Shown: positions 13,831-62,729 of the stretch, piece by piece
Position numbering within the stretch: position 1 is the first letter of the stretch
Layout of the letters: every line of letters begins with the position of its first letter
Made by a program: the position numbers and the translations under genes
NCBI RefSeq assembly: GCF_031769215.1
Contig: NW_026781994.1
Span: 186,001 to 250,000, forward strand
Direction: 5' to 3'
Origin: Ylistrum balloti
Lineage: Eukaryota
Length of the DNA stretch: 64,000 bases
The notes under the pieces: model-generated
Database searches by the model: none
Told to the model about the DNA's origin: nothing
The model's input: the letters and a program-made list of their open reading frames with translations, nothing else

Positions 13831-13844
13831 TAGTCAATTTTGAA

Positions 13845-21635: not shown

Positions 21636-22693
21636 TATCAAAGGATAGGATGTTGCACGATATTAAAGGATAGGATGTTGCACGATATTAAAGGATAGGA
21701 TGTTGCACGATATCAAAGGATAAGATGCTGCACGATATCAAAGGATGAGATGTTGCACGATATCAAAGGATAAGATGCTGCACGATATTAAAGGATAAGA
21801 TGCTGCACGATATCAAAGGATAAGATGCTGCACGATATCAAAGGATAAGATGCTGCACGATATCAAAGGATGAGATGTTGCACGATATCAAAGGATGAGA
21901 TGCTGCACGATATCAAAGGATGAGATGCTGCACGATATCAAAGGATAAGATGCTGCACGATATTAAAGGATAGGATGTTGCACGATATCAAAGGATAAGA
22001 TGCTGCACGATATCAAAGGATAAGATGCTGCACGATATCAAAGGATGAGATGTTGCACGATATCAAAGGATGAGATGCTGCACGATATCAAAGGATGAGA
22101 TGTTGCACGATATCAAAGGATGAGATGCTGCACGATATTAAAGGATAGGATGTTGCACGATATTAAAGGATAAGATGTTGCACGATATTAAAGGATAAGA
22201 TGTTGCACGATATCAAAGGATGAGATGCTGCACGATATCAAAGGATGAGATGCTGCACGATATCAAACGATAAGATGCTGCACGATATCAAAGGATAGGA
22301 TGTTGCACGATATCAAAGGATAAGATGCTGCACGATATCAAAGGATGAGATGTTGCACGATATCAAAGGATAAGATGCTGCACGATATTAAAGGATAGGA
22401 TGTTGCACGATATCAAAGGATGAGATGTTGCACGATATTAAAGGATAGGATGTTGCACGATATCAAAGGATAAGATGCTGCACGATATTAAAGGATAGGA
22501 TGTTGCACGATATCAAAGGATGTTGCACGATATTAAAGGATAAGATGCTGCACGATATCAAAGGATGAGATGTTGCACGATATCAAAGGATGAGATGTTG
22601 CACGATATCAAAGGATAAGATGCTGCACGATATCAAAGGATGAGATGTTGCACGATATCAAAGGATAGGATGTTGCACGATATCAAAGGATAT
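21636..22693. repeat. 25-bp minisatellite, about 42 copies
   Basis: Unit aaaggat(a/g)(a/g)gatg(c/t)tgcacgatat(c/t); period 25 (21640, 21665...); one copy near 22510 is shortened by 5 bp; no spacers. Confidence 0.97.
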
Positions 22694-33499: not shown

Positions 33500-36400
33500 C
33501 TGTTACGACCTAAAAACGCCTGGCTTTAGAGGCAGGCTTATCCCTATCTAGAAATGAAAAGATAGAGAAATCGAAAAGATCATTTGTGAAGGAGAAAGCT
33601 GTCGCTGCTGATTTCGCTGAAGGAAACACGGTTTGTTATTATGGGTAAGAAAGCACTATCAACTAAGATTTTTGTTATGAAAATGGGAACGTTTTCATAA
33701 TACTATGATTAGCTTTTGAAACCTTCTTGAGTGAAGGTTAATCAATTTTGTATAAACAGTGGGGCTCATTAGGCTGGACTTTATATCAGTGCATAAATGC
33801 AGAATGTTAATGCTCGACTTCTTGTAAATACCGAAGCAACTGTGATCATTCTCCCACGACAGATGCAAGAAAAAATTCCACATGAGTCACGAACGGTATT
33901 GAGAGAGATAAAAGGGGACCTTCCAGCGGCGTATGGCTCTCAGTTGGATGTGTCTGATGAAGGTGTCTTCTGTATTAGACCCATATAATACAACGCTTCC
34001 ACCTTTGAGACCGTAGAGTATCTGCCCACTACAAGAGGAAGTGGACCGAAAGGAGTTATTGATATGTCAACAAGCCTATGGTTATTAGACAAAGTCCTCG
34101 TCAAGAAGAAAGAGAGAGCACTGTGATATTGAGAGGACTATGAAGAAAGCTGAACGACGTAAGTATTCACGATGCATACCACTTACCACGGATACATCTG
34201 GATATCACTGGTTCTCTTCCCTCAATCTTAACGTCGGATGCTTGTAGGTAGAACTAAATGAAGATCGACCTAAGACGGGTTTTGGCGCTCGCATGGGTCT
34301 GTGCGATTTCACAGTTATGCCGTTTGGATTAATGTTAGCACCACCGACTTCGAACGGCTGATCTAAATTGAATAAGCCGGTTTCTAGTGGCAAATATGCA
34401 AAATCTATTAAGATTAAGAAGACATACTTGAACTAAGGAATAACTTGATTGTTGATATGCAGAAGACAGGTATTCGGCCGCCTGTCTGTCGCTGATATTT
34501 AACTTAAAGCTCACAAGTGTCATCTGCTTGGATAGAGAGTTCGCTACCTCGGACATGTAGTGTCTAAGGTGGGCATATCAAAAGATCCCGAGGAAGTACA
34601 AATAATGGATTGATGGCCGATACCGCCTACTGTCAAGGATGTACGGGTTTTCTAGGATATTGCAGCTGTTGTTGCTGCTTTGTGAAAGATTTCCCAGAAA
34701 TAACCAAGTACTTACACATGTAAAAGGAAAATGGAAAGACGTATGTGTGGGCACTAGAGAATTGTAAGAAGCCTTTCAGACACTCAAATACCAGTAACGA
34801 CGCAATAGGAGAGGCCCGTTGCAAAAATGGAACAAAATCTTACTTAGTCAGAGAGGCAATACTGTGTCACACGGAAAGTGTTTCTTGCTGTTGTGCATTT
34901 CTTCAAATACTTTTAACATTATCTTTACGGTAAGAATTTCGTGGTAGGAACCGACCACAATTCTTTGTTGGTTACTGAATTTCAAAGAGACTGAGGGTCA
35001 AATGGCTTGTTGTCTGCAGGCACTTAGCATCAACATCATGGTCATTAGACACCGACCTTGCAGCAAGCCCAATAATGCTGACAGTCTCAGCGAAATACAA
35101 TGTAAACAATGTTGATATGAACCACAGCATCAAGTGGTCGTTCAAGCATCAGGAAGAAGAACTGTACTTTGCTTCTGTTATGACAGTTAAGCCACAGGAT
35201 CAAGTGGTCAATCAAGTATCAGGAAGAACTGCACTTTGCTTCCTGCATGCCAGTTAAGTCTCAGTATCAAGTGGTCGTTCTAGTATCAGGAAGAACTGCA
35301 CTTTGCTTCTGTTATGACAGTTAAGTCACAGTATCAAGTCATCGTTCCAGTATCAGGAAGAAGAACTGCTCTTTGTTCTTGGCATGACAGTTAATGATGA
35401 TAGGGCAGAACTACAATCGGCCAGGAATACTCCAAAATGTGACAAGCTATGGCTTATGTTGCCCGCAGTGTGATAGGCGGACGAGTCCCTAGCAAATCAA
35501 TGACATTCATGCAATGTGCTGAGGCTGGTTTTTTTTTGTCATGGAAAGGATAGCCATAAAAACTCATTTTGAGCTTCCTCCACAAGCAATGACACCAAGC
35601 ATATTCTCATGATAGCAGGTTCCCACACGAAATTGAGGAGGTGACCTGTATATTTGATGTATCTTATGCTCTACATTCTGCTCCAAGCTCACACTCCGGA
35701 ACTGCGTTGTTCCAAGTGATGTGTGCATTTCTCTAGATCAACAAAGCATGCACTACGCATATCATCTACAGTCGAAGCTTTTCAACAAAACGGTTGTCAC
35801 GAAGTCCCTTCATGAATAATTATCATTACTAATTGTGAGGGATATTGTGATTCACGCTCCACTGAGCAAGGAACCATTCAACATCACAACTGAAAAATGT
35901 TTGGTAGAGAGACCGGTACTTGACATTCAGTTTGAGATGTCATGGTAAATGCAAACCATTCATCAGAATGAGTGGGTCTGGCAGCTGAAGGAGTGGATGA
36001 AAAAGACACATTAACATGTGCTCAAAAACATAAACGTACGACCTGACAGGACGCCAAACCTGAGATAAAGATGGGAAAGTTCCTACGAGATAACTGGAAA
36101 AGTGATGTCGCTTACAAAGTCAGATGTGGGTACAAGAGAAGAGTACAAGCGATGCATGCCGACGGAATGAGAAAGAGAAATCCACAAGAGATCCAGGAAA
36201 AATGATCAAGGGAGAAGAGCAGGATCTAAACGACAGGTGAGGCCGCCTAAAAAGGGAAAATAGTCAATACTTATTTTCTTCTATATTTTAAATAGCGAAA
36301 GGAGATTTATACATTTCTGTATGAGTTGTTTGTGTAATGCAAGAGGACACTTAAGTGTTTGACCGTAAATGGGGGTTTTTGCGGTCACTTGCATGCTTGA

Positions 36401-39203: not shown

Positions 39204-42200
39204 TTATTCGATATTAAAGATTAAAAGCCTCTCTTCAAATCTTTGAAAAAGCTGCTCGTTTGTATTTTGTTTTGGCTGCGATAAATAATTTTCATTTTCA
39301 ACTTCTGGTTTTCGGTTTTCTCGATGTTTAGATCTTGAAGCTGAAAAACAATAAATATTATCTATAAGGTCACACATGCATTCAAACTTAACTTTGATTA
39401 AACAAAACATGCATGGATTCCTCACAAAATTATCTAAATGCTTATGTTTAACTAACCTTGCTGCTATTGATCTGTGTACAAAAATTTCTTAAAGACACAA
39501 CAGAGTTAACACAATCAACTTGTCGTTCATGTGTTACGATGTCAACTGCAGGATTTGTTTGAGATAAAGCGCATCTCAATCACAAATTCATTCAAGTTGT
39601 ATGTTCACATAGGACTATTGTATTAGGAACGCCACTGATTTGCCTTAACATTATTAACTTAATATTTCTAAGTTTTTCCAACCTACCTGCAAATTTCCGA
39701 TGTAAAACATAAACGCCAATAGTAATAAATATGGCAACTGATGTTATTGTCAATATCGACACTGAGGCAATTACACGAAAGTCTTTGGAGTGTTCCTCAG
39801 TCCTATAGGAACTGTTGACTTCAGTAGCAAATTTCTCCTCTAAAATATATGCAAAAAGGATGATTAATACTTGAGCTAGTTTAATACTTAATTTGTTGGC
39901 AGGTTTAAGACATTTCCAGGGTTATAAATACGACATCACGAAATAATTGCCAATTACCCATTCTTGCAAAATTCTTTGAATTGCGTATACAGCAGAGAGT
40001 TATACCCTTGGCTGTCACATCATTCTGGTGTGGAGTATAATGTATATGTCTAGACAACTCAACAAATTAAATGCTGCGGTTGCTATATTTTCCGAATCAA
40101 ATATATTCAAATTTAAGTCTGTTTAGGCAATCGAAGAAACGATGTTGAAGCTAAATGTCAATCATTAGATGTAATGAATCCTTCAGTCCAGCAAAACCAT
40201 TTGATTCTGTAATATTAAGATCATGAACAAAAATTAAATTATGATCAATTTGACCACTTTTTGAGCCGTTCGCGGTTCTCTATAGCAATTAGCCCCATAT
40301 CATAGCTTGAACTAATTAATAGTGACAAGCTTGGTTTGAGTACTTCAATACTAAAGAAAATTTGCCACAATTCTTGAAATAACATTCAGTGAAAATAATG
40401 TTATCAGTCCAGTGTTGGGCTCCAGACATATGTAAAGTCGAGTTTAACATATAGATAGTAATTTCTATTTTCTTTTTAAATTATTTGGTAATTATATGCG
40501 TCTTATTTCAATGCACCCCCGAATCGCATTCTTCGGAAAGGTGAATGTAAAACACTTGCCAGATGAAATGATGGGCGGAATTGAAAATGGCTGCGATCTA
40601 CTCCAGGCAATTGGAATCCGTCCAAGACAATGCACCTGTTGATAAAAAAGGTTTCCTTGTAGTTTTTAGATGCGTCTCTGCGTATATCGTTCTTTTTTCA
40701 TATTTTGCCCTAGTTTTGTTGAATATGAGTTTGGATTAGAAGTAAGTTCACATGTTGGTATTTCTTGCTGTTTTTGAAATATTTACCTCCACAAAGTACT
40801 CGCCTCTCCTGATTCTGTTGAATGTATGTGTATATGATGTAACTGTCCCCGGTATCTATAGCACAAAGAGAATGTTGAAATAGTTAACTGCAAACATGGA
40901 AAATTCTGTTACATCGTTCGTGGATGCTACTACTACTGTTTATAACAGCTGTGTACAAAAAAGGTAAGCCCTTAAACGAGCTTTGGCGAGCAAACTTAAA
41001 GATGATTTTCATAAAAAGTAATTTGAAATAAAAGCAAATTTTAAACGCATTTTATCATATAACTGAGGAATGTTAAATTTTGGCAGGATTTAAAGTAAAA
41101 TAAGGCAGAACTAAACCAAACGGAGGCAACCTATTTTTGCACTATTTTCAGTTCATAACAAAACGACATTACCAGTGTTATGGCAATCGACTTCTGAATA
41201 CGACATCCATTGAAAAGCGATTCAGAATATACAACAGAAGTGATTGGTTTTTTTTTTTTTTTTAAATATTACTTGGATGAATTTACTAGATGTGATGAAA
41301 TGTTATATGTGTAACAATATTCGCTAATTAGCCTATTTAACGAAAGAGAATCTGTACCTACGTCATATTTTTGTATTGGGTTCAATACATCATATGATGC
41401 TGGGTACTCGTACAAATGAATGCTATAGTTTGTGTTGCCTGCCGATAGTTGGTGAGGAAGAGGCTCAAAAACTACTTGGACAGTTTCATCAGCCAGGTGA
41501 ACCCCAATCGCCGGCTTCCATCCTGGACTTAATTTAGCACTCTTTGAAACTGAAATTAAAATGTGCATTAAAGACTTAAAGAGAATTACCATACACGTGA
41601 AATCGCCTTGTTTTCTGTGTGACATTTTATGGATTTCATATTATGATACTATGTTAAATGATATTCTATTCATCATTTTATTTCTTAATTATTCATATTT
41701 TATTAATTTATTAATTTATACAAAGGGTTTGTATGAAAAGGTAAAGCCTTAGGTTTTTCAATATAACTTTTACATGATAAGTTTTTCAATATAACTTTTA
41801 CATGATAATAGTAAACAATAATTTGGTATTTGGCTTTAAAGTGTTTTTATTCTGAACTTTTATTCAGTAATAACAATAAATATCTCTTTGTCAAAGTGGT
41901 TACCAAACAGTATAATTTCTTTCTAGACAAGTACCAATAATAGTTTCCTAAGTTACACGAAGTGCAATAATGCCAATATGAATTTAATAACACTTTATCT
42001 TAATTTGTTTTAACGCTGTTATAATGTTTTGTTTAAACTAATTATACCTTTGAGATCATAGTCAAATATTCTCAACACCACATGATATTATACAAGATTT
42101 CAAACTATAGTGTATTTAAGATTATTATAATATTGTTAGACCATGTTTTTAACATTACATTTTCGTATACCAATAGTAAGTTAAAAGTCATTTTATCAGG

Positions 42201-45200
42201 AAATGACCGATTCCGGTTATAAAAATGGGAGCCTATTTTGCAAAACCAAACAAAACTGGGTCCTTCTTATTACCAAATACAGTTAATATATTTGCTGTAA
42301 CGTATACTTCCCATAACTTCAACAAATACTAACGCAAACTCTTATCTCGAAAAATATATATATATCAATGTAAAACATATCAGAAGTACAATTATATCTT
42401 TGAATTATGCTTTCATTGGTAGAAGTCTGATTACTCTTACTACCTCTAAAATACAAAGTCCTTATGAAGCTTACTATTATAAACTGTAATGAAATAAGTC
42501 AGCACAGAGTGTTCTGGGGATAGCGGGGCGAGGATAAGGACGTACAAAAAACAGCCATGAAGATTGCAACTCGTCTGACAAGGTTCAAATCCTCTATATG
42601 ATAACTTTATATCGACTTTCTTCTGCAACAGAATACTGAGAATTAACAACAATGTATAATTGACCTTTTTCATTAAACCATGACCGTTAAAAATATTTAT
42701 GTGTGAAATCTTGAAGGCACTTTAATTATACCGAAGCGTATGTGCTCTTAAGTATGCAGTGCTCGTACTAATAGTGAATCGACAAGATACTTAACAATAA
42801 ATATGACGAGATGGCGTAACGTAACAATTAGAGCGAAAGCAGTTAGAATTGATGATTAACATCAGACAACTCCTGTCAAGTGCGTCTGCAAAATCACCAG
42901 TTCGACCTGTTTTTGCTAAATAATTAGTCCATCCATCACATAACACACCTCGGTCCCCATGACAAATGATGCCATTCCAAAGCATCCATTTCGGACAAAC
43001 AGGAAGAATTAGATACCGCAAATTTATATAATAGATTTAGTTGCAATATACAGCTCTTTCGTGTTTCTAAGTCTTGCAGTGATGATAAATGCTTAGTCTA
43101 ATGAATGCTAGGAGGCGATTGAGAACAATCTAAATTTATGAAAATAACTGTCAAAAAACCACATAGAGATATATCCCGAACTTCTGTACCTTGATAATCA
43201 GAGAAAGCGAATGAAAAAGATATAAGAATTGCGCAAGATAAATGGCAAAACCCTGATAGGGAGGTGTTCTTATCCAATATATTAGATCACTTCACAAAAC
43301 CGTAAAAAGTAAACAACCTGCGTGTGTTTTTGGGAACAGTGCCCATATTCCCATAAATTAAAATGTGACATACAGATTCATTTTACTAGACTACCAAGGT
43401 CTCAATATTGATAACCTAAATTCTTAGGTGGAATTTTACAACGTATGCAAATTAATGAACGAATCAGCCTGACTTAACAAGTTTCAAAATAAATAAATAT
43501 ATTTGAATCTTCGACAAGCCCACCTTCATCGTTTTATATTCTACCTACCTTATCATTAGTAATAACAAAGCAAAGTGTTTCAATTGCATGAATTCGTGTT
43601 TTCAATATCTTTGCGAATTTACTTAGACTCTTGAATTATTTATGTATAAAGTCCATATTACCAATAATCGTAAAACTATAAACAAAGTGATATCAACAAT
43701 TTGTATTTTCACTTGCACTTATAAACACTTATCTTTTTTTATCAGTACATACGCCTATACCTTACAAATAGCATATCTATTAAAAACAAATAATAAATAC
43801 ATGTACAATTATCATAACCTATTTATTCTTTAATTGTGGCCTATATAATCGTTTTCGTGATATTACGCTCAGCACAGCACCCACAAACACTCTTACACTC
43901 ACAAACACATACAAGATCAATCAATACTTTTTTATGATAGGGTCATTCATTCAGAGTACAAAACATAAGACAAAAAAAAAAAAAAAACTCAAACAAACAA
44001 ATAAACAATGATTTCTTTTTATGCCGGGGTATTTAATTAAGACCTTTAAATAAGAAATGCAATGGCTATGAATGAGTTACCTGTAGCGGGTTCTGTTTCA
44101 CTGACTTGAAGTGTACAATTCTTTGATCTGATAGCCAATAATAATATGGATCTCCTTTCATAGTTTCATTAGCAACGCTGGTCATATTCACTATCCAGAA
44201 GGCACCTAAACATAGAAAAAAACAGCAGTTATTTCAACGAGATATTCGACTTATTGAGGTATTAGTATCTCATAAGCAAATTATATTTACATGTGCAGTA
44301 TTCCAATAGCCGCCTCTCAAGTCAATCATTTCCGAAGTCTGTTTTGTTATTACTTTCAACCTTCGGAAAATGCTTTGTCCCTACCTGCGCGTGTAAAAGT
44401 ACATAATTCAAGATTATGTTTTTTTTTTTTTTAATTTATAACTTCAATTTATCATAAATCGACAGATTGGCGACATTCTTACGTAATACTGTCCTTCCAC
44501 ACGAATATGAATGAATTTTGATTGGATAGGCCTTTGAGGTATAGGGCACATAGTAAAGTCACATGACTGGATTGATTCGAAAAAACGGTTTTTGATCCAA
44601 CTCGAAAGGGAGGCATTACAGTATAAGGCGGCCGGTGTTCTCGTGAGACAATAATTGCAATTTTCAGCGCGTTGTGAAATATCGAATACCGTTCAATGTT
44701 TCAGCTGTTCCCATAATTGGATTTACTCCATCGTATAAGTTTTTTACGCTCAGTATAACTCAATACAAAATTCATATTCCCCAAATGTAAATATGAACAT
44801 TAACAATTATCAAAACAAACCTAAATGCATCTATTTCCTTCATTTAATCTTATATCGAAATAATAAAATTTTGTCTTTATGTTATGGAGATTTGCCGAAA
44901 ACTAAAGTAAGTGTAAGAGAGGACAGATTGAAAGCCCAGCAGTGCTGAGATCGTTCCTCTCTCACACATATTGTACAGTTTGAGACTTATCACTAACTTA
45001 AAACATATATCTCCTTGTATTAATATAGAATACATTGATTTTTAATAGAAAAATATTTATTATTGCTGTCCTTTTATAATTCGATGACAGCTCCACCTAC
45101 ATTTGTTCAACAACATCAACGTTATACATCACATATAACAGCCAAACACAACAGCATACCGGTAAAGTCATTACCTTAAGCTTGTGAATTATGACGAATA

Positions 45201-48200
45201 ATAATGATATCATGAAGTCAACAAAGCATGCTTTTGGCTGGCTTAGTTCACGTTTGTAAATATATTTTCACTGTGCCCTCTGTCAGTGAAGCAGGACATT
45301 CCTTCTTCAGTCAATGTCAGAGTTGTCAGTGTTGTTTTATCATAATACATCACCACATATTCACCGAAACAGTAAGTTTGGATGTGGTCACAATAAAGCA
45401 AAAGAAATTTTATTTCTCCATGTAAAGGTATTCCTATATCAATTGAAATTCAGTAATGTGTCACTATTATACGTTCCTCTTGTAGATTCGTGAAAAGATT
45501 TGTAACCTATTGAACACGGTGTTATATTCAAATAAACAAGAGTATCATTGGAATATTTAAGTATGTGCTTTATATCGGATGTTATACGCTTTCTATTGGG
45601 AAATGTCTCTGTCACCACCCTAGAATTTAATAAGGAAAAGTGCACTAAACCAAATTATATTTCAATTAACATCAGGTAGTAACTTCATTATCTTCAAAAC
45701 AGTTAAAGTTATTTGGAAAAAGATGAAAAATCCCCAACTACAGACAACGGAGAGCTCAGCTGTTAACATGAATACTGAAAGCGTGCCCTTATCTTGAAAA
45801 TTATGGAAACTGTCACCCTGTGAATGATGTGAAAATCTTTGTACACATATGTATGATTTTCGTGGTGCCTTTTGTTTCAGCTGGCACACTACATACTTGT
45901 GTGTTCATTAGTTATGCTTTCATTTTGACAATTTCAAATTTAATTTTACCTGCTATTTTGAAGCAAGACTGTCTACTGGTATACACGTACTTTTTACATC
46001 CATATTAGGCCAATAGAGAGACCAAGCAATGTCAAATTACATTGTACATCATTCTCGGTTGTAGTACAAAAAGAACAAAGGATTACAACTGTGTTTAAAC
46101 TGGTAAAGAAACGTACTTATGTTCGTCGCGTTGTATGAAATAACAATAGTGAGCACAGGAACTGTAGTAGCTCCATCTTTCTTGAGACTAGAAGACAACA
46201 TGGACACGTATGGCAGTTCTTTAACGAAGTCCGTATCTCCTTTCCTCTTCTTCTCTAAAATATTACATTTCTCCCATTCTAAAATATCACAAAAACAAAA
46301 AGTTCAATAATAACGTTAATAATGCAAACAATTCCAATATTTCAAAACAAGTTATGTGATGTTTTGTTTTTGAAAGGTCAGATGGCAGAAGAGAATTTAT
46401 AAAACAAGAAAATAAAACCATGTCGCTGCTGCAAATATCTTAATCGCTACAGAGCTCAAAATATGTATTATATGAATTATGCGTTTTCCCTTATTTCTAT
46501 CATTTTTTCGTTAGTGGCAAGGGTTCTTACTTATCTTTAAGGTGGAATTTGTTTCCAATATTTTTTTCACTGAAAGACAATAGAATGGTTCACGAATTAT
46601 ATGCAAAAATGTATGCTAATTTGATTTGACAAGTGCAACTCTCCATCGCAATCAAAAATGTCATTTTTGCAAGATTGCTTAAATCTTTTATTTTGTACTT
46701 TGACAAAACAATGTTTTGGCTTAGTAATCATATCTAAGATAGAAGGATTTCAATGTTCCTAATGTTGTAATTTTCATCCGAATGTCATTTGTTTTCAAAA
46801 ATCATTTAGCACACAAAAATATTTTATTTTTCAGTCATTAAATTAAAAAAAAAAGTAAAACTCTAGAGAAAATATTCTAACAACGGGAAAACATTGAAAT
46901 TGCCGACGCTAAAAACCAAAATGTAGAACACAAGGAAAACAGAGGGGCCACATACTCTCGCACATCTGTGATCAAGTGTGAAACAAAGCGTAGTCGAATT
47001 GACCATACCGCATTGTTATCTGTTGTAGGTTTTGGTCTATAATCTGTTTACCATCTCGTCACACTATTTACGACCTTAGATTAGAGTGCAACTGAACAAA
47101 GTTGGTCGATTTCGTACCATCTCGTACACTACGTACATCAGTGATTGTACACTCCACAGTGTTCATTTCTCTGATTACGGTGACCGTGTAATCATCGAAA
47201 TGTCACACTCTAATCTTCTACTGTTTGTGTTATAAGAACTTCTATTCTTATGGCAGTATAATATAAGATATTTGAAAACCGGGATCAGACATCAACAAGT
47301 TCAAAGTACTTTTACTAGTTATATGCTCCTGTCACAGTGCACTTTGTCTTATTTGGAATGAATCTTGCCATATATCATTTGTATACCTCGTTTATTGCTT
47401 TCCATGCAGTATGGTGGCGGCTTAAAGGAAGCAGGAGTCTGAAATGTAGAATAAATCTACATAGTATACCATTTTCAATTTGTAATTTATCTGCATCAAA
47501 CAGGTTATAAAAAACTTGGTTACACCATCACAAGCACAAACCATTTTAAATATTTTTTTAATACGCCTGATGGGTTTGCTGTTTATGTACTCTCTAGTTA
47601 TACAGAGGTCACGATATCCCTGTCGGTAGAGCTTTTGCCTACGTAAAAACCGGTGAAGATCCGCTGTGTGTGGTTCAACGCTCTCTGCCGATCGTCGCGA
47701 TAAGTGTTTCTCAGGATATGAATCGATTTATGCTGAAGTGGTCCGTCCTTGACAAACCACTTTTCACTTATTGTCCTGGCTGACATGCAGTGAACCGGTA
47801 GAATTTTTAGTCAGGTATGCACCAGCTAAAAATCCTGCCTATTAAGGATCCTAGTTGTTCATGGGTCGATAAACCTTAACAAACCCAGTTTTTAATGTGA
47901 TGCTTATGTATAAGAACACTACTGGCTGTTATGTTAAAAGAAACGAAACACAGAAAAAAGTATCGTTTGCAGAAAGCAGTCTGATAGCAACACTGTCTGA
48001 TTCAACAAGAGATGAAATTCTTTGATATAAAATTATGGGAATATAATTCGTCATTCTTATTTGAAAATAAATTAATTTGGAAGTGAAACTTTACATGTCT
48101 GTTAAGACATAAACAAAAGCTATCAGAGGAAAATAGCGATAAAAATAGCGGTATACCTAAAACCATGGAAACAACAGAACATATTAAACATGATAACTCA

Positions 48201-49307
48201 GCGAAGTGTCAAAGTGTGATTTGTGGTTCATAATTTGCTGTTGCTTTAACACAATTGCAGTCTATGCTTACTGTCCTTCCGAATCACCGTTTGCCCTTTT
48301 ATCCTCTGCTATTGCTGTATTGTTTCTTTATCTAAATGTTGCAAATTTTTTCTGCATTTAGATACAAGCATACTTTTGTTGTTGTTTCTATATCAAATAG
48401 AAACCAAAGGTAATCATACACTCCGATATTTATCAGTAACCAGAATAACCATGTCAAGGTTACTGAGAATTACGTAAACAAACAAGAAGAAAATACAAAC
48501 ATGTCAACATGACAAAAATCCGAACCCAATTTCAATAAAATTGGAGCAAAATAAAACCACTTTTAGACTAAAAAAATATCATCAGTTTTTTTCAACGGAT
48601 CTTAATCTATTCTGTTACTGGTTTATATTTGGGTATTACAGGATGGTAAAAAATGAAGGTATTTTGTGTGGTAAGTGTGTATCCACAGATGAGTGCACAC
48701 GTATTAAGTTCTCTGTCGACCTCGTTTTTTTATAATTTAGAATGTTGGACACACATGCTACTCTTACCAGAAGTGACATTCTTAAGAACAAAGGCTATGA
48801 AAGAGGATAACTACAAGGCTGGCCTGTGTTTTTGTTGATGGTTAACAAACAAAATGTACACTGATTTGATCATGTCCAAATCCTTCTTAACATGATGTAG
48901 ATAAATAGTTACCATATATACTGTATCACCCAAGTAGAATGAACAGACGGGTCTCGTAACTTCAATTCCGAAAAAAGTGAGGATTGCTTAGCCATGAACA
49001 TATCATTACAGATTTTAAAGAAAGTAATCACACAATGAGATATTTCTGTAAGACAAATGCATTTCAGTTCATTTAAATGTGGTAGTTTGAGGTGGAGTTC
49101 CTTAAACAAATATTTAGAGAACTAAGCACAATTTTTAACCTAAAACGGTTACAAGTGAAATGATAAATGACTTTAGCTTACCTGGCATTGCTTAGGTAGG
49201 CACGATATGTTCCTTCCAATAAAATCTCCTTGACACTCCACCGTCGTCCCAGTCGATGTGTTGAATAGCACAAACAAAACTTGAAGGATAGTGTATTGCA
49301 TTTTCAT
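39204..49307 (-). CDS. IL-17-receptor-like type I membrane protein, paralog B, about 411 aa, 10 coding exons, 45-aa tail, no SEFIR/TIR
   Basis: Exons 49307-49182, 47438-47387, 46278-46117, 44205-44081, 42622-42475, 41549-41362, 40855-40787, 40635-40560 (GC donor), 39839-39687 (TM: VIASVSILTITSVAIFITIGVYVL) and 39340-39204. Phases 0,1,1,0,1,0,0,1,1, identical to paralog A; open frame throughout. FnIII-like motifs VPVLTIVIS and WKPAIGVHLADETVQVVFEPLP...YSIHL. The family name is motif-based inference. Confidence 0.8.
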
Positions 49308-52300
49308 TTTACACTTCTATGGTGATATCCGTAGTGTTTTTTTGTATGACAAGCCGATGAAGATTTTGACTTTATATGTCCCCTTCTGAACAGTTCTCGG
49401 CTTGGGTATCATGTGATATTAAGGGCCCGTAGTGTAGACGATATCGCGTGATGCCATGACAATAGGAAGTACTGCAGTTTTTACAGATATAGAGCCTTAC
49501 ACTAGTTGTTTTGAGTTACTGACAACTGGCTTTCCATTCATCTTAGCTTAATAACGACGAAAGAAAACCATTTTTCATGTTGTCTTAGGGAGTGATAAAA
49601 AATTCGCATGTGTTATTACAGCAATTAAGGAATCATTTAATTATATCCCTGAAATAATTGACAACTAGTTGAACAAATGAAACTACAGTTTTAAACATAT
49701 CATTTACTCTCACCATCATGCATGCAATAAAAGGACACATTCCCTATCTAGAGTTACATAAATTGAATATTTCATAAACAGTTACAGGGTTCTCAGGTTT
49801 TGAGGAATATTTCCGCTCAGCATACATTATATCGCGAAAAAATGTTTGTTGCATTTTGAAATGCAGTCATTATACTTCATACTGGTTGTTATTATCCATC
49901 ATTTTAAGACTAAGAAATATAAAACCATGAACTTGTAGTGTCAGACTTTTGGTCATGTCATGAATGAATAACACTTGACTATTTTAAAACTTTCTGCTTC
50001 TTTTTGGATGCCTCTGTAACAAAATAAAGCAACATATTACCTCGCTTCCATAAATTCAAATAGAACATGAAAAGTTGGAGATGTCTGATGTTTAAGGAAA
50101 TGCACAGAAGGAAACTACGAAATTAGTCGTACGAATAGGTTGAATTAAGTCTAAACTTTACCTTTAGTAGGTATAAAAAATTATACATGTTACCTTTACC
50201 CTTAGAGAGAAACAATTGCAACAAACACCCATTATAAAATAGCTTTTTGCTTTCTTTGTACTTCAATATACTATCAAATGATAAATATTAATTCTAGATA
50301 CCTCTTCACGAATCCTTTTCATTAAAAATGCTTCATATTGTTGAAATAGCAATTGATTTCATCATTTATTGATTACATCTATTCCTAGTGAAAAATTATG
50401 CCACGCATGAATATTGTTATGGTATGTAGTTTTGGTCCATGATAAATAAGAGACCAACGAGGTGAAACTATAATAAAAGTTAAATAAAAGTCACACGAAT
50501 AGCAAGAAAATATCAACATGTATACATGATCATACCACAAACTCTGATTAAATAAAACTAGTGAAAATTATGAACATATACTTATAGATTTCTCAAAAAA
50601 AGCACAAAGAGAATAAGACCAGGTCTTCAGGAAGATTAAGCGTCTTCTGATTCATCGACAACGTCCACAAGCTTGAGTTAACAAAGACTTCAAGTGTATT
50701 TTCTTTTGACTAATTGACTTTCCACATATTGAAGTGTACATTATATAGAGCACTACATATAACATAGAAACGTGTTATTAACGGTCAATTAATATTACCG
50801 TTAAAGGTGTTTTTGAAGCTTTTTTTTTCTGTGCAAAACAGACAGCAAGTTTACTGGTCTAACGTTATAATATCTACCATGTACCGTTTCATATTTTCAG
50901 GCTCCACACGTTGCTTTATACCACAAACGCACTAAGGGCAGTGTTGCATGTCACTTTGCTGCTCATAAGTGCATATCCGCACCTTGTGACATGTGTATTT
51001 TTTTGTGTTTTCATCCCGGTTCTTCGATAGCTATGTTGAAATGAGTGATGTTAACTGAGATTAGATAATAGCACGAGAAATTAACTTTCATGAGTTACGG
51101 CTAGTTATGCATGAAACTACAACTTACTTTTCAATGATCGCTGGCTTGATTAGCTGTGCGGTTAACTATGATGACGGTACATGTGTATTGTTACTACAAA
51201 ATTCTGTCAATGTCTAGACATAACAAAAAATCGCACAGCACGGATACATCACGTCTTTAAATATATATATAGGATAAATTAAACGTATTTCTGTATGGAA
51301 TGTTTGTATATCAATAATATCATTGACGTCTTCGACGATGTTATGATGTTTAAAGCACTGAATGTTTGCACCCGAATATACACAACAATACACATAGTAT
51401 TAGGTTTGTATTGCATTGTAGACAATGTAAAGTGCTTACATTCTTTCTATAATCACGTAGTTCATAAAAAGGTAATATGTCGAAATTACACCATTGTTGG
51501 CATTTTTGTGTCATTTCAGTGAAATTTGGGAATATAAAAATCAGAAGAATGTACAGCTTTTTCGTTCCCATTTTAAGGTATGCACAAAATTATCGATAAT
51601 GTTGAGCACTGGTGATATCACGTGTGGTCTCACGTTACAGTCTCGGTACTTGCTAAGTGTGGACTTTTTATACATCCGTAATTGTCATGCATGTTGTAAC
51701 CAAGGGCCATCAATACGGTTAAAAAAGATCGTCAAAATAACGCGAGTTTCGTGCGTTTTAAGGTAGAACAGCATTAATAACCGACTTGCGAATATTTACA
51801 CATATATTTTGAAAATGAAGTACTCTTTGATATTCGTGAAGGATATTCTAGAACATAAAGCTGTTGTTAGAAAAATCTCCCTTCATATCAGAATCATAGA
51901 ACGCATCTAAGCTATTTTCGTTCAAACTTATTAACTAATATCTATAAAACTGCTAGGAAAACGCATCATGTCGCTGATCCGACTGCACTACGGACTATTT
52001 TACATTAAGACTCTTTGGGAAACAAAATATGTACCAACGAATTATTTCAAAAAAATATTTTGGTGCATCGAATCAAAAAGAAAACAACATAACACGGAGA
52101 TTAGCTTATTGTAACGCAATCTTAATAGAGATATATGCAATAGTTAGGCAAAACATACAGCAATTCAAAATTTCAGAAATGTGATGAAGTGTTCACCTAA
52201 AGTAATACAGTATACCATTCATATTATATCATGAAACTAACCCAATGTTTGCTTTTTGGACACTTATTTTATTTATAAATGAAATCGCACTCGATTACAG

Positions 52301-52569
52301 ACGTACAGGTTTACGCACTTAATTTTCATAAAGATGTTTAATATACATGCACAACAACTAGCTTGAAGAACAATGTATTAACACGCGAAACAGATTGCAC
52401 TGTGGCGTTTTTAATGACTAAGAATTCAAAAAAATTGTAATGTTTTCATGTTTCTCTGTCTCAGCATTTCTTTGGTCGTCCGCTGCAGCTTAAAACAACA
52501 CGTCTATGGCAAAAATGAACAAAAATAAGATTTACACGGGGACTCCTGAAAAAAATGCAGGGTTTATAA

Positions 52570-52830
52570 GTCAAGGCGTTCCGGAAGATTAAGCGTTCTT
52601 TATTTGATCGACAATACGCCCCATGTAAAACTTTGTCAATCTAAATCAGTATCGTCACGCTCTCAAACAAGCAACCAATCAAGCATCAAACACGAACAGA
52701 TTCTTATTGCACAAAAAAATAGAATATTTCTCAATGAGATCGCTATGACAAGTTTAAAGCTTCCCCACATTTTCCATCAAACTGCATCTCTTGAAACCCT
52801 TGATTATTGGGAACGGAAAAAATTACAATT
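52570..52830 (-). mobile_element. Penelope-like (Naiad-type) 3' fragment plus 3' motif
   Basis: Minus strand QGFKRCSLMENVGKL..HSDLIEKY, then the reverse complement of the 3' motif (gttccggaagattaagcgtt...gatcgacaatacgccccatgtaa on plus). Confidence 0.65.
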
Positions 52831-53495
52831 GTGACAATGAAATGCTTATAACACAAGCTTATGGAAAGCTATCCATTTTGGTTCCGTTGTAGGAATAGCA
52901 TCGAGCTAAGCAGCTGATGTAAAGGAGTCTGTGGTGTCCTTGATTTCCATATCTGATGGATATTTACGATGAAAATGGTAAAGAAATATAACAATTAAAG
53001 ACAAGACGTCATTAATACATCTGAAAGTCAAACTGAAGGTCTTTGTGACCTGTTTTGATCAATTCTTCAGTAAATTTACCCTCGTATGTAAAACAAAACG
53101 AGTCAGCCAACCTAGGACTGGATATCTTGACGGTGATTTATGAATATATCAATCAATACGCACTGATAGTATTTCGCTTTCAGTTGAAATAAAACCAAAA
53201 GTCTGTCTCTGATGGACTAAGGAAGACTTCAGTAAATAATGTTTACAGTGTGTTAACGAGGCATTCCTAGATACCCTCTCGGATATAATATTAGACATGC
53301 TAAAGAAAAGCGATGTTAAAGGAGAGGTCCTATATTTTGGAGAGGGGGTTCTGCTTTTAGGATTTAGTGCCTTGTAATTACTCTGTCTCGCATGGTCTTA
53401 TTTTGGCACTGCACACTGACGTTGTGATATATCTGTATCACAACAATATAATCCGAAACTGGATTGATTTGTGTTTCATACAACCTGTATGAACT

Positions 53496-56400
53496 TCACT
53501 TGACGTCATCTATACAACCATCGGGATAACAAAATGTTTCAAGTTTTTCAGCCAATAGATTTAACTGCGTATCTTGATCAGAATGTTGTGTGGATGTCAT
53601 TTCCAGATTATTGTTTGTGAATAAATTTTCTTCTTGAAGATTTCTATTCCTCAACTGTCGTGCTGAAATAGATTATATAAACAACTAAAATTTGTATGAA
53701 TCAGAACATGAATTAAATATTTGATTACACAGCGAACTTATTATTCAATTTTAAGGTAACACTAAGGACTGAACAACATCTGTACTTCTCATGATAAAAA
53801 TTATTTGACATTCATTTGATTTTTTTTTTTTTTTTTTTTTTATGATTATTGTTATTTTGTGTTGACAGTGATACCTTTGAATATGCGATAGCAAAACACC
53901 ACGACGACAGAAAGGAGTATCACGGTAACAGGTAATCCGAGAACGACACCAACTTCAATTCTGTGATCCGATGGAATAGCTATTCTAGGAATGAGCGATG
54001 GTTGTGGGCTTGAATACTCTTAACAAAGCAAAAGTAAAATACATTTTAACATATCCTTATCTGTATTCATCACAGATTTATAACATTGATCATCAAATAA
54101 TATGAATGAAGGCACATTTTAAATAACAGGTTTGGTGAGATTTGCATCATTTTGGTTGGTAAAAAAAGTGTTACGTTCCATTGCAACTGCAATACACAAA
54201 TATTTAAAGTATCCTCAAAAATGACAATTCGTGCCAGTCTTGTTTATTTGTGTTTTGTTATCATGAAGAATGAGGAAGGCACATATGGTGTACGAAAACG
54301 TCAATTGTATTTTGTGTCAAATAATTGAATATGTGATAAAAGCTGAATAATTCGTAACCATTGTGCAATAACGCGATATCATAAACATATACACTGCATT
54401 CGATACTACAATAAAGTCATTGTACAACATGAAAAAATTCAACTATCTTTTTAACATCACAAAATACGATGAACAACATGGAAACTATTGCAAAAGTACA
54501 AGCATCTTTTGCTTCATCGACGACACCCGACATGAAAGCATTAGTCCAAGTTAAAGTTAGTAATGTTACATTCTCAAATGATTCCTTGCAATTTTTGATG
54601 ACAGCGAAATTAAATATCCCGTGCAGTTTACAGTATTAAAAAGCATTAATATGAAGACTATTAACCTAATGCCCTTCATATAATATTAAATGAAATAAGA
54701 ATATTGATATGAAAATGTTATCAATAGGCATTAAACGAATTTTAATATCTTGTCGTCTAGATAAAAATAAAAATATCTTAACTGTCTGGGCACAATGTAC
54801 AGTACCTGGAAGGGTGAAGTCAGCCGATTTCACCCATGTTTTGAATGGACAGCTGTTGCAGTTCATATACTCTATCTGCAACGACATTATGATAACAGCA
54901 TATATACTAGCTTTTTAAAAGCATATGTATTAAATTGTAGTTCATCATTTGAACCGCATTATTCGAGTTAAGTAGTTCGAACAATGACGTTATGATTGCT
55001 TACTGCTCAAAATGTATATTTTAAATTAATAGCGATGGCAATAGCGATATGATAATCTATCCGATTGGAAAAAAATAACTGCAATTATAACTTGTTTGAT
55101 CTAAAGCAGATTTTCCTATCCACTGAAACCATTATGCTAAATTTAAAGTTTAAAGTCCTTACCATAACTTCATAAACACCATCAGGTTCATCGAAATCAA
55201 AAATACAATGGTTGTCATCACCAGCCTGAAAGGTTAAGAATATGTAAATGTGGCTCATACCTTGGAAACGCAACAAGAAAATAAGTAAATACCAACATAT
55301 AATTTGAAGCGATACACCGGCAAAGCTTCATCAAAGAACACCCCAGAGAAACAAGGAAGATGTGAGATTTGTTCCGAAAGATTAGGTATCGTCTATTTCA
55401 ACAACGGTCTCCGTCGCGTATTTTTACAAAATCGTTCATGTAAGTAAGTAATAACGTTTTATATAATCTAATTTATGTCAACATTACAATTTGATAATTA
55501 ATAATAATGTCTGGACAAAACTGGTACGAATTTTTGCAAAATTTGTAAATTAATTTATCAAATAAACAAAGAATTGTGTACCTAGATTTACTGGATACAG
55601 GATGTTTGATAAGAAACCCTGGTATGAATTAGACACAAAGTACAATACGTTCTTACCTTGTTATGTTTTACTGTCGTGCTCAATTTTACCTCCCATGTCT
55701 CCCAGTCCTGGAGACTGATTTTATAATACGTGTTATTGGTTACAAAGCGAAAGGGCAGAGGTTCAAAAACTACATGTATGCCTCGATGTTCTGGAAGAAC
55801 CGCTGTCATGATATTTGGTTTCCATTCATTTTCTTGGGTATCAGGCAAATACCGACCTAAATTGTAAATCGTTTAATCATTTAACGTGCTATTAATACGA
55901 CAAACATTACTGATTTTGATATTGATCCATATTAATAACAATCACAACAATTAACAATTTACTTAATAAGAGGAATCTTAAGGCACGGTCACGCCACTAA
56001 TCCTATGAGTGCCCAATAGTTTCTAAAAAAACATATTCTACTTACGATTATGCGATGTAACTTGGTAGGTTATACTTTGCCCCTGTAGATTTTGATGTCT
56101 TGACGATGTAAATATTGTAATAGTCAACAAATAGAGGTTCAGAAACACTTCACATTTTCCCCAAGTACAACGAACATTGCATGTGTCGAGATTTCCAAAA
56201 GTACTGCGGAAGGTACTCTTCTGAAATTGAAAAAAGAAATTGAATTAGGTTTCGCCTGATAAAATTATAAAGGTTTTCCATCCTCTAAAAACAGCATAGA
56301 AAATATCAAACTAAAATTTAATTGAACTGGAGCAAATTATGAGCAAAAGAAATAACACAAATACTCATGAAAATGAACAAAGAAAATAAGATCAATGCTC

Positions 56401-59400
56401 CAGAAAAGCGAGCCTTTTCTGCAATGTTATTGGAAAACTTGGCCAATCCCAGCAAGTGATACCACGTTCTCAAATGATAAAACAGTAATTATGTACTGTT
56501 TATTCCATAAATTATATTGAAAAATGATTTTAAAAAAAAACGCACTTCAATTTACAATCCTCAGATAAAAATATAACACAAATCATTGTTATAAATCGAC
56601 AAACTTTATCTGAAATATCCAAAAAAATCACACTGAATTTCGATAAAACAGCAATCTTACCTCCCTTCGGGCTATTTTGGGAGAATGTACTGGAAACTGT
56701 CTCCAGGTAGGAAATTTCTCATAATACGGATCAACGTAATACTCGTCAGAAACCTCCCTTGTACTTCTCAACAGTAGCTGCATTACAGCTATGCGGCAAA
56801 CAACAACATTCGCCAATATAATGCAGCAATATTTTCTCTAAAATTTGGGTATTTTTAAGTACGTGAGTTTAAAACACTAGAATTATGCATATAATTGTTT
56901 ATCCGTCAATTGGCATCGCTAATTGTTAGATAAAACATTTTTCAAAGAAATTTGCTATTAACGACGCATATGTGAACAATTTTTCAACTTAATATTCATA
57001 TTTGAACAGAAGATATTGTACTCTTATTATACAAAAATTGATATTTTTTTCCAGCATCTGACATCTTAATGTTAATTTTTTATACAGTTTTTCACAATTC
57101 CATTCAATGCTTGTAACCTTGTGGTATTGTTCTCACCAGCATTGTTGTTATCCGTTGGCAAGGATATGTCGATACTAAGTACAGGTTTAGTCTGCCCAGA
57201 TTCAAAGGATGGGGATAGGAAGATTCCAGTCACTAAAGGAATGGGAAGTTTGGCTCCGAAAGACACATCTTGAATAGGACTTGCCAAATGGAAACATCGT
57301 GATAACTCTGAAATGTGTATTAGTTTGATTTTTATAAATCGTATCCACCATGGAAAATGGGTTGAGGGTATATTTGTCATAATGTAACGGTCGGAAAAAT
57401 CACTGTTAGATGGATTTATACAATACTCACTGTCCTTGTATAGAGCTGTACAGCTGAGAGATGGCTCGAATTCGTATCTCTCCTGTCAAAATGAAGCAAT
57501 GCAAGCATTACGATGCATAAACGTTGTAAAACATGATTTTTTTTAATTTGCAGTTTTGTATCTTGTTCAAGCCATGAACTGGTTATTATATGTCCATTTT
57601 GATACCACACTCTTTTTGTTCGGGGCTGATGATATATCATGATATCAAAATAGTCATTTCACAATCTTTACAGAAGCAAAAAACAAAATTAATACAACAA
57701 ATAACAAATACTAACAATAAAAATAAGGAATTGATTGTAATTAATTACAATTTTAAAGGTAATTTAAGTCTTTTCCAGTTAGATTGCGGACAATACTTTC
57801 AACCGTCTTAATACTTCGCGATCATAAAAATGAACCGCGTAATCGCAAAAGCATGATCCCCGCTAAAATAACCGGCAATACGGTAGCTGGATAAAATTTT
57901 GTAAAAAACATATTTCTCTGATCATTTGTTCATCTATCAGTAGTGTATATAAGGTGTGTTTATGTTGATTTAGTGTACTCGTCGGGTAAACCTGCCTGTA
58001 CAGGTATTCACTGGGAGCCGAAGGGCACATAGACAATACAATGTTCACACTGAAGTAACTAACCAAAGTGTGCAGTTCAGATCGGTTTGGATCATAGTTG
58101 TAAGAAAATACTACTTTTTAACTTTACAGTGAATAACACGAACAAAAATAGCTTTAATAGTTATGAGCTTAAATAAATCTTTCTGTTTAATTTTAATGTG
58201 AATTGTAATGTATGATCGACGAAATTCTAAATATCATCTTATATCACGATAAGGATTTCTAAACAAGTTCGCAATACTTTTCACATTTAATCATGCAAGG
58301 GGTATGCTCCTGCATGAACTATTCTTATTTTGTTACTGTGAAAATGTATTTTTATGAGAACTTGATACATGTGAACGAGTATCGTGTTGATAAGAAAAAG
58401 GCCGTGGACACTGATCTTTCTCCTGTTATCTGATAGTACAAAAGCATTTACTTGTCAAAGAGGAAAGTGCACCGTGAAGCTAACCAACTAAACCTTTAAC
58501 TTTAAAAGTGCATTTTCTTTCTTACGAAATCATTATACACAAGTGTATAAACTAATTTCTCTTCCAAAACTAGTGTGTAATTATCATTATTATTTATTTA
58601 TTATTGATTTTTATTATTTTTTTGTAATGTTCTCGTTGTTGTGAGGTTTCCTGGTGGTACATTGTTTTAATTATTCACAGGATTGACACAGCTCTGAGAT
58701 GGGCATTTTTTCCCTTGTGAAGCTGTTTGCAAGGTTATGTGTCATAGATAAAGGAAAGAAAACCCTTCTATTTGGTATTCCTTTTTATCAAATGACAGAC
58801 TCTTTAGCTTTCTTTACAGAGCAAGATACATCAAGAAAATACCAACATGGCAACATAATCATAATTCATACTCATATTACCTCAAACTAAGGCAAAATAT
58901 GAACAAAATATTTTTTTTCTCAATTGGATCACTTTGCCGATCATAAAACCCTCCAATAATTTTCTTCAACTTACATCTTTTGAACCCTAGTGTTACTCGT
59001 TTGTCAGTTGGCAACTTCTTACACAAAAATCGTGATAATGAGAACATGCCATTGAATATCGAATCAGTTGTGACATAGATTGGATATGCAGGGATATTGC
59101 TACCCAGAAATGGAAAATTCTCAATATTCAGCAAACGTATAATGATTAAGTAATTCATTATTTAATTATGTAAAATTGAAACACATCTAACTCTAATCAT
59201 CAGAAGCATCAATTTGCGATTTTTAACTTCCCGTGATTTTTTTAAAAAATATTGTATATAATTGCGTGCAGTTAAATATTTCAAATGCATTCACTATCGA
59301 TATGTTTCACGTGAAAATTGACCGAGTGTGCTATTACAGGTAACAAAAGAATAAATTTAAGTTCCCAGAAACCGTAGCCCAAGCCTATATATTCACCTGC

Positions 59401-60739
59401 AGTGTAAACGTAAACTAACTTTTACCATTGCAATGAAAATACCTGTGTATAAACTATATATATATATGCATGTATAATCATATAACCGTTCCATTGACTT
59501 ATTCTAGCGATGTTTTGTAGGCTATGTGTTGATCGTGTGTACTCTAAACCATCTGATGAAAAATTGCTTAAATATTTCCTGGTACATTTAACATCGCATG
59601 TGTGTAATTACATGAAAGTATGCTCTAATGAACTACGAATGCCCACTAATTTTAATGATCAGTAACAAACTATCAAACTATCAAAGTTTATATCATAATT
59701 AGTATGAATGTTAATCCCTGAAACATCAATGTGATACTTTTTTCAGAAGAGTAAGGATACTTTAAGACAAAAGTATAATTATATAATCAGCGATAAAGGT
59801 TAGGATTGAGAGACATGTTCCTTCCAATTGCATGTCCTAAGAGGCAACTTATGTGGAAACTGCAAGCAGATTTAGTGTTCACAGTTATGTCCTCTACTTT
59901 GGAATAGAAAGATAGATAGATTGGTAGGTAGGTAGGTAGGTAGGTAGGTAGGTAAAAAACAAAAACGATGCACTCCTGATCACGTCTTTTTGTTTTGTTT
60001 TTTCTCCATAATTAAAGTCAGGCTATAATACCTGCACTGTTACGTCTGAGATATATTCATGTTTAGTACGAAAAGTCTTATATACTGAGCATATACGGAA
60101 AAACTGAACATGATACACAACAGCAAGAATACTATATTAATGTGTGTATTTTAAGTCAATTTTTTGTAGTATCTCGGAACTGAATACAAAGGGTAGATTT
60201 AGACTTCAATAACTATATATCAACATAAGGTCAAAGTCTCGATAAACATATCAGCTCTAAATGTACTTATCATGTAGGTATCTGTGGTGTATTTGCATGT
60301 CCATCACACACCAGATACATATCGCATCATACTAATATGAGAACGCCTTGATGGACATAACTTAAGACAAATGTACGAATTATTTCCTAAAGAAACTAAT
60401 CCAGATGATATACAAATATTTTTTTATTCCAGTCCTTTGCAGGTTCTACTTCTTCATCGCTATTTCCACAGCATGTGCTTGAGGTCGTGTTACACAGTGT
60501 GATGACTCAAATAAAAGTGTCGCAGTGTTTACAATGCTACCAGCTATACCGTATCATCGAGACATGACTACAATACTCACCATCTGACCTATCTTCTCTG
60601 TCTCACAGAGACTCCAATTCGGTTGACATTCCTGGTGGCTTCCCATCGGTGGGTCATTACACTTGTCCAAACTGAAAGTCAAACTGACCAATATAGTTAG
60701 AACAATGACTTGATACAAATTTCGCCTCCTTGTAAACAT
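53496..60739 (-). CDS. IL-17-receptor-like type I membrane protein, paralog A, about 442 aa, 10 coding exons, tail truncated at TGA
   Basis: Exons 60739-60581, 57482-57431, 57307-57137, 56788-56661, 56220-56046, 55856-55657, 55225-55163, 54875-54806, 54018-53875 (TM: VGVVLGLPVTVILLSVVVVFCY) and 53662-53496; all GT-AG and in frame. Signal peptide MFTRRRNLYQVIVLTILVSLTFS; FnIII-like KPVLSIDISLP and WKPNIMTAVLPEHRGIHVVFEPLP...YYKISL. The family name is motif-based inference. Confidence 0.82.
58880..59130 (-). mobile_element. Penelope-like (Naiad-type) RT 3' fragment, inside paralog A intron 1
   Basis: ENFPFLGSNIPAYPIYV...LGFKRCKLKKIIGGFYDRQSDPIEK. Confidence 0.7.
59908..59954. repeat. (GATA)n(GGTA)n microsatellite
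   Basis: gatagatagattggtaggtaggtaggtaggtaggtaggtaggta. Confidence 0.9.
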
Positions 60740-62067: not shown

Positions 62068-62538
62068 GGTCTATATAAGTTATATACAATATACATATTT
62101 ATTATAGATACAATCCATGAACCTTCATAGTTATATACCATATACATATTTATTATAGATGTAACCCATGAACCTTCATAGTTATATACAATATACATAT
62201 TTATTATAGATGTAACCCATGAACCTTCATAGTTATATACAATATACATATTTATTATAGATGTAACCCATGAACCTTCATAGTTATATACAATATACAT
62301 ATTTATTATAGATGTAACCCATGAACCTTCATAGTTATATACAATATACATATTTATTATAGATGTAACACATGAACCTTCATAGTTATATACAATATAC
62401 ATATTTATTATAGATGTAACCCATGAACCTTCATAGTTATATACAATATACATATTTATTATAGATGTAACCCATGAACCTTCATAGTTATATACAATAT
62501 ACATATTTATTATAGATGTAACCCATGAACCTTCATAG
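62068..62538. repeat. 51-bp minisatellite, about 9 copies
   Basis: Unit gaaccttcatagttatatacaatatacatatttattatagatgtaacccat; the 17-codon period explains the 174-aa ORF. Confidence 0.96.
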
Positions 62539-62729
62539 TGCCATGAAGAATACAAAATACTTTCTATCCAAACATGTATAATTTCCAGTCACATTAATTA
62601 TCATATTCATAGTAATCTGAAAAATAATTGAACTAATACTACCGGATAAACTCGTTTCAGGTTTTATTCACTCGAATTTTAGAATAGAATCTACAATGGT
62701 ATTTATCTAGAAATTTATTGACTACGTCA

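Follow-up and report, generated by a model that had tools for sequence, protein, structure and literature searches.

Two tandem short-tailed receptor-like genes of scallops as candidate non-signalling chains of a diverged IL-17 receptor branch

The IL-17 receptor (IL-17R) family, which takes in vertebrate IL-17RA to RE, ILCR-1 and ILCR-2 of C. elegans and the receptors of molluscs, is the described system closest to the locus reported here. Mollusc IL-17 ligands are greatly expanded (PMC8353272; PMC11087794), and mussel IL-17Rs have been retrieved by their SEFIR domain (PMC8353272). Mollusc IL-17 receptors have been catalogued only via SEFIR (PMC8353272), so chains that lack this domain would be missed. 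Here we describe two adjacent genes, A and B, on the minus strand of a 64,000-nucleotide stretch of AT-rich animal DNA from the saucer scallop Ylistrum balloti (assembly GCF_031769215.1, contig NW_026781994.1, positions 186,001 to 250,000; hereafter the window). We consider it a little short of an even chance that the two products bind ligand but do not themselves signal, as chains of a cytokine-type double-FnIII receptor system that probably represents a very diverged IL-17R branch.

Like members of the IL-17R family, the A and B products are type I proteins with a two-domain ectodomain, FnIII in its membrane-proximal domain and possibly so in the other; they give below-threshold matches to the Pfam family Ig_ILCR1 and have IL-17RA among their best Foldseek matches. 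Unlike members of that family, they have no SEFIR domain and no match above threshold to any curated ectodomain model, and they carry an extra Cys-rich N-terminal cap and tails of 50-60 aa with conserved motifs of their own. For want of a SEFIR domain and of any above-threshold match to a curated ectodomain model, we have left A and B out of the IL-17 receptor family, although they may still work as non-signalling chains of such a system. A short tail without a signalling domain, beneath a putatively ligand-binding ectodomain that may be related to that of a signalling receptor, is shared with IL-6R-alpha, IL-11R-alpha, CNTFR-alpha, IL-13R-alpha-2, IL-1R2 and the soluble splice forms of IL-17RA/RC, and, as with non-signalling cytokine receptor chains and decoys, a long-tailed relative of A and B is encoded next door. 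However, those chains belong to other superfamilies or are soluble splice products, whereas A and B are distinct genes that arose by an ancient duplication, encode membrane-anchored proteins and retain conserved tail motifs. A tandem FnIII ectodomain is also found in double-FN3 receptor tyrosine kinases (Torso, insulin/IGF1 receptor legs, Tie, Eph), and the FnIII legs of the IGF1R/insulin receptor are the top Foldseek match for A; unlike these kinases, A and B have no kinase domain, a much shorter ectodomain and no match at the sequence level. A Torso-type double-FN3 protein has been proposed as the ancestor of the IL-17R ectodomain (PMC11087794).

Genes A and B, their tails and the scallop cluster

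A and B are real, intact tandem paralogs. Gene models were rebuilt by hand from open frames and splice sites, with ortholog proteins as a guide, and this bore out an earlier note on the window, which had proposed two 10-exon genes with identical intron phases (0,1,1,0,1,0,0,1,1), low identity and open exons: the phases are identical, both frames are intact and the two proteins share 23% identity. In the protein alignment, six of the nine introns of A and B lie within 0-2 columns of each other. Direct translated comparison of the DNA detects similarity in one exon pair only (exon 6), and the paralogy becomes clear only after the orthologs are aligned; the A and B types then align across the whole ectodomain, with seven invariant cysteines and the motifs DPYY, VVFEP-x-P and G-x-Y. 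All introns of gene A are GT-AG; in gene B, intron 8 needs a GC donor (G followed by gcaagt, at 40559). The Pecten maximus ortholog has the same GC donor (at L002:18953), which supports this splice site.

The gene A product comprises a signal peptide, the Cys-rich cap, two beta-sandwich domains, a membrane helix and the tail. The RefSeq protein of Y. balloti LOC132545217 (P0007, "uncharacterized", 411 aa) is an exact substring of this product from Met32, where the RefSeq model begins, thereby omitting the signal peptide (window 60646-60739, minus strand). The ATG at 60739 is backed by ortholog N-termini, which do include a signal peptide, as residues 2-48 of the A-type protein P0006 align with 60733-60593 at 55% identity. 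In gene A, introns 1 and 2 begin with the same 12 bases (gtgagtattgta; 60569-60580 and 57419-57430, minus strand), which may be due to coincidence or to duplication of a short segment. Gene B is an unannotated yet intact gene, its 411 codons uninterrupted by any stop or frameshift, and sequence searches found no Y. balloti protein for it. P0007 and the orthologs served as queries for the database searches and folding, the Pecten ortholog P0009 standing in for gene B.

A-type proteins were recovered from P. maximus (LOC117330542), Mizuhopecten yessoensis (LOC110461231), Argopecten irradians and Y. balloti, and B-type proteins from P. maximus (LOC117330541), M. yessoensis (LOC110461239) and A. 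irradians. These orthologs are 403-495 aa long with short tails, and all are named "uncharacterized"; a literature search on the five LOC identifiers found no paper that mentions them. A profile of exon 6 run against 1.84 billion representative proteins returned three true clusters only, all from scallops, and word-index searches of 5.8 billion proteins supplied the remaining A-type and B-type orthologs. No relatives outside scallops were found among the 1.84 billion representatives or the 5.8 billion sequences, searches in which the exon-6 profile missed even the neighboring paralog described below. In P. maximus, A and then B lie on one strand, adjacent and 2.5 kb apart. Identity by region was taken as the measure of divergence in place of dN/dS, synonymous sites being expected to be saturated at the 45-60% protein identity of the orthologs; it amounts to 50-58% in the ectodomain and 26-44% in the tail.

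A third paralog, gene C, adjoins gene A immediately upstream on the same strand, beyond the window, with its stop at the window-equivalent position ~65,671. Its product (608 aa in Ylistrum, 656 aa in Pecten) has the family motifs in matching exon order (DPYY, SSVTYQFTVY and MHVVFEPIS, then a membrane helix), and its translated matches to the A and B proteins reach E 1e-4. Canonical splice sites of exons 4-9 fit the A/B phases, although these exons were fitted to the expected phases and are no independent prediction. The last, cytoplasmic exon of gene C (L001:4291-4973 in Ylistrum, L003:3384-4256 in Pecten) accounts for 231 and 291 aa, respectively, with 41% identity between the two species, against 45-55 aa for its counterpart in A and B. 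By eye, this exon has some likeness to SEFIR (PKVNILNMC..., ...TIVTICHHYG..., ...LICFSETD), and its alternation of strands and helices recalls a SEFIR or TIR domain; neither impression is used as evidence. The three-gene cluster C-A-B, in which A and B are the second and third genes, is present in two scallops.

The cytoplasmic tails measure 60 aa in gene A and 50 aa in gene B; the lengths of 55 and 45 aa given in the earlier note are right for the parts encoded by exon 10 and too low for the whole tails. Short tails are conserved in four scallop genera, and the stops, together with the motifs just ahead of them, are common to A and B and their independently annotated orthologs. A-type tails end in (F/L)-x-Y-P-(D/N)-x-x-(I/M)-D-(D/E) across the orthologs. 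Of the four B-type sequences, three, P0009 and P0004 among them, end in F-E-x-(R/K)-(LL/FF)-x-F-N; the M. yessoensis model P0002 is without this motif. The E-x-(R/K)-LL/FF of the B tail resembles an acidic di-leucine sorting signal, which would suit the internalization of a bound ligand.

Downstream of A and B, the 4.2 kb between the genes and the 15 kb after B were scanned, and neither the 98 sense-strand open frames of at least 40 aa nor the proteins themselves gave a Pfam match to SEFIR or TIR. In Ylistrum the longest such frames reach 82 aa downstream of A and 109 aa downstream of B, and in Pecten 69 aa and 62 aa, respectively; the gene that follows B in P. maximus is convergent and only 1.2 kb away. 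A tblastx comparison of the region downstream of Pecten B with the window returned repeat noise only, and no relic of the cytoplasmic exon of gene C follows the stop of A or of B; therefore, the short tails are old, and not the product of a recent truncation. The absence of a downstream SEFIR or TIR exon argues that they are real. Thus, the proposal that both tails end early withstands the shared ortholog stops and the downstream scan, and the tails are truly short, as far as DNA can show. The sole real Pfam match among the 98 frames is to Lectin_C (E 1.5e-4), in what would be a C-type lectin exon belonging to another gene beyond B; this frame, assigned from its sequence since the scan gave no frame name, probably lies at ~25042-25344 (minus strand).

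Affinity of the ectodomains and rival readings

Both genes encode an N-terminal hydrophobic leader and one hydrophobic stretch (exon 9), which AlphaFold2 models as a helix; A and B are type I single-pass membrane glycoproteins with a signal peptide. In a whole-protein Pfam scan of all seven family proteins, the only family matched by more than one member was Ig_ILCR1, which models the Ig-like domain of ILCR-1, an IL-17 receptor of C. elegans. In the domain-only scan, this model matched three of the seven, of both types and in the same register (profile positions 2-88 of 114): P0002 (B-type; E 4.7e-5, 23.9 bits), P0006 (A-type; E 1.5e-4, 22.2 bits) and P0004 (B-type; E 5.5e-3, 17.2 bits). PepSY alone was likewise matched more than once in that scan, far more weakly (E 0.16 and 0.23) and in two A-type proteins only. 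None of the seven matched the generic fn3 or cytokine-receptor models, and single exon frames gave no Pfam match.

AlphaFold2 models built from the seven-sequence alignment have a mean predicted local distance difference test score (pLDDT) of 57-58, and of ~80 in the membrane-proximal domain, which is modeled as a confident but generic FnIII fold; its structural matches are all generic FnIII domains. In a Foldseek search of 350,542 PDB chains, the gene A type matched the legs of IGF1R at rank 1 and IL-17RA at ranks 2-4 (E ~2e-5, 14-16% identity), and the gene B type matched IL-17RA at ranks 16 and 18, behind transglutaminase barrels. The IL-17RA alignments span ~280 columns and both domains at 13-16% identity. 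The Foldseek check against IL17RA suggested in the earlier note thus retrieves IL-17RA for both types, amid many generic tandem-FnIII receptors. What stands of the "IL-17R-like" label is the below-threshold Ig_ILCR1 match and the presence of IL-17RA among the structural matches; what does not is assignment by any curated model above threshold. IL-17R membership of the ectodomains is accordingly weakly supported.

Several results weigh against the placement of A and B in a diverged IL-17R branch. The curated models IL17_R_N, IL17R_fnIII_D1, IL17R_fnIII_D2, IL17R_D_N and SEFIR match none of the seven family proteins, Ig_ILCR1 stays below its gathering score (27 bits) in every member, and a search of PDB sequences with family profiles (of the whole family and of the second domain alone) retrieved no IL-17R. 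Model confidence is low for the first domain and the cap. The cytoplasmic exon of gene C has no SEFIR or other match in Pfam, in PADLOC (bacterial SEFIR-type models) or among PDB sequences. Gene B is unannotated, the Y. balloti annotation leaving the 10 kb that follow gene A without a called gene, and a search for sequencing runs returned one DNA run (probably the source of the assembly) and no RNA run. In about half of genuine IL-17Rs, however, the double-FN3 is too diverged for domain models (PMC11087794), so that weak detection is expected and is no evidence against an IL-17R.

A skeptical account of the locus would make the short tails artefactual, either because A and B are decaying copies or because a 3' exon encoding SEFIR has been overlooked. 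The annotation gap at gene B, the lack of any RNA run and the imperfect RefSeq model of gene A, which begins after the signal peptide, are what such an account would draw on; we judge it very improbable, since both frames are intact over 10 exons despite ortholog divergence to ~45-60% identity, the stops and the motifs preceding them recur in independently annotated orthologs, no SEFIR, TIR or long open frame lies downstream in two species, and neither stop is followed by a relic of the gene C cytoplasmic exon. If the genes are taken as sound, A and B might still be a lineage-specific orphan family of double-beta-sandwich membrane proteins (serving adhesion, recognition or another purpose) whose FnIII domains are generic and whose likeness to IL-17Rs arose by chance. 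The lack of relatives beyond scallops in either sequence collection, the generic nature of the structural matches and Pfam evidence lying entirely below threshold all fit such a family. We nevertheless regard it as unlikely, because three related, divergent proteins match Ig_ILCR1 in one register while no other FnIII/Ig model scores, and because, for A, Foldseek places IL-17RA among the very top matches over both domains; a failure to find relatives is itself a weak argument, given that the exon-6 profile missed even neighboring paralog C.

A different cytokine-receptor affinity would make A and B alpha chains like those of class I cytokine receptors (IL-6R-alpha, IL-11R-alpha, CNTFR-alpha), in which a two-FnIII module for ligand binding sits on a short tail that does not signal and hands a helical cytokine over to a signalling chain. 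A short tail is usual in alpha chains of this kind, and all B-type proteins have W-S-R-S-Q-P-F at the position of the WSXWS motif, between a Y-x-V-E-V strand and the membrane; the first domain has a C-x10-C pair ahead of it, and there is structural similarity to domain 2 of EpoR. The WSXWS motif itself is absent, however, its place being taken by W-S-R-S-Q in the B type and by W-(V/A)-K-S-A in the A type, and the EpoR scores lie less than one Z unit from those of generic FnIII domains and were counted as tied. The C-x3-C-x4-C cluster would also misfit the disulfide pattern of the cytokine-receptor module. With no Pfam cytokine-receptor or fn3 model matched, while Ig_ILCR1 recurs, we find membership of the class I alpha chains quite unlikely.

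Coordinates and other features of the window

Table 1. Positions of genes A and B, their exons and tail motifs in the window, and of gene C in its own loci.
Feature	Position	Strand	Description
Gene A (RefSeq LOC132545217)	53496..60739	-	10 exons, 442 aa, all introns GT-AG
A exon 1	60581..60739	-	Signal peptide and start of Cys-rich cap; then phase 0 intron
A exon 2	57431..57482	-	52 nt; then phase 1 intron
A exon 3	57137..57307	-	Then phase 1 intron
A exon 4	56661..56788	-	DPYY motif; then phase 0 intron
A exon 5	56046..56220	-	C-x3-C-x4-C cluster and ITYQVT motif; then phase 1 intron
A exon 6	55657..55856	-	Start of membrane-proximal FnIII (WKPNI...VVFEPLP); then phase 0 intron
A exon 7	55163..55225	-	Then phase 0 intron
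A exon 8	54806..54875	-	W-V-K-S-A-D-F; then phase 1 intron
A exon 9	53875..54018	-	Membrane helix, residues 362-382; then phase 1 intron
A exon 10	53496..53662	-	Tail and TGA stop at 53498-53496
A-type C-terminal motif FCYPDGCIDD	53505..53534	-	From ortholog alignment
Gene B	39204..49307	-	10 exons, 411 aa, architecture as gene A, 50-aa tail
B exon 1	49182..49307	-	Then phase 0 intron
B exon 2	47387..47438	-	52 nt, length equal to A exon 2; then phase 1 intron
B exon 3	46117..46278	-	Then phase 1 intron
B exon 4	44081..44205	-	DPYYY; then phase 0 intron
B exon 5	42475..42622	-	Then phase 1 intron
B exon 6	41362..41549	-	FnIII start (WKPAI...VVFEPLP); then phase 0 intron
B exon 7	40787..40855	-	Then phase 0 intron
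B exon 8	40560..40635	-	AWSRSQPF; then phase 1 intron with GC donor (gcaagt at 40559-40554)
B exon 9	39687..39839	-	Membrane helix, residues 338-361; then phase 1 intron
B exon 10	39204..39340	-	Tail and TAA stop
B-type C-terminal motif FEERLLIFNIE	39207..39239	-	From ortholog alignment
Gene C, Ylistrum	L001:1-4976	+	
Gene C, Pecten	L003:1-4259	+	

Elsewhere, the window contains a minisatellite at 11481-13835 (25-bp unit, ~93 copies), which gives rise to long spurious Cys/Pro/Val-rich open reading frames on the plus strand, and further tandem arrays at 17747-18110 (34-bp unit, 11 copies), 21635-22692 (25-bp unit, 42 copies), 35123-35394 (67-bp unit, 4 copies) and, between genes C and A, 62078-62539 (51-bp unit, 9 copies). 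By eye, an open frame at 16720-17043 (minus strand) resembles part of the reverse transcriptase of a retrotransposon.

Proposed role and significance

Gene structure, paralogy, conservation, the lack of SEFIR and an FnIII fold in the second domain are established. Where A and B are read as non-signalling chains of a diverged IL-17R branch, we infer the IL-17R relationship itself, ligand binding and the role as co-receptor or decoy. Their ligand would be secreted and plausibly come from the expanded mollusc IL-17s, and IL-17-type cystine-knot cytokines are the leading candidates. They would pair with the long-tailed product of gene C as co-receptors; alternatively, they may capture and internalize ligand as scavengers, and the conserved tail motifs could serve sorting or adaptor binding. 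The product of gene C would be a natural signalling partner of both.

An accessory or co-receptor role is favored because the neighboring paralog has a long tail and two scallop genera have retained the cluster, and a purely passive decoy is disfavored because the tails carry conserved C-terminal motifs. As sequence features, these motifs would favor a co-receptor or a sorted scavenger. Given the long-tailed paralog immediately upstream, a co-receptor role is at least as likely as that of a decoy. In its most specific form, the proposal would make the locus a three-gene scallop module derived from IL-17Rs, with gene C carrying a diverged SEFIR-type domain and A and B acting as SEFIR-less co-receptors or internalizing decoys for mollusc IL-17s; we hold this version to be possible, if doubtful.

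If the helical-cytokine receptor class should prove the correct one, A and B would be candidate alpha chains. Either way, the locus is an uncharacterized receptor cluster, detected only in scallops, for which exact gene models are now available and one gene of which is absent from the annotation. If A and B are derived from IL-17Rs, they would represent the first non-signalling IL-17 receptor chains that are both encoded by genes of their own and bound to the membrane, and would offer a handle on how invertebrates tune IL-17 signalling.

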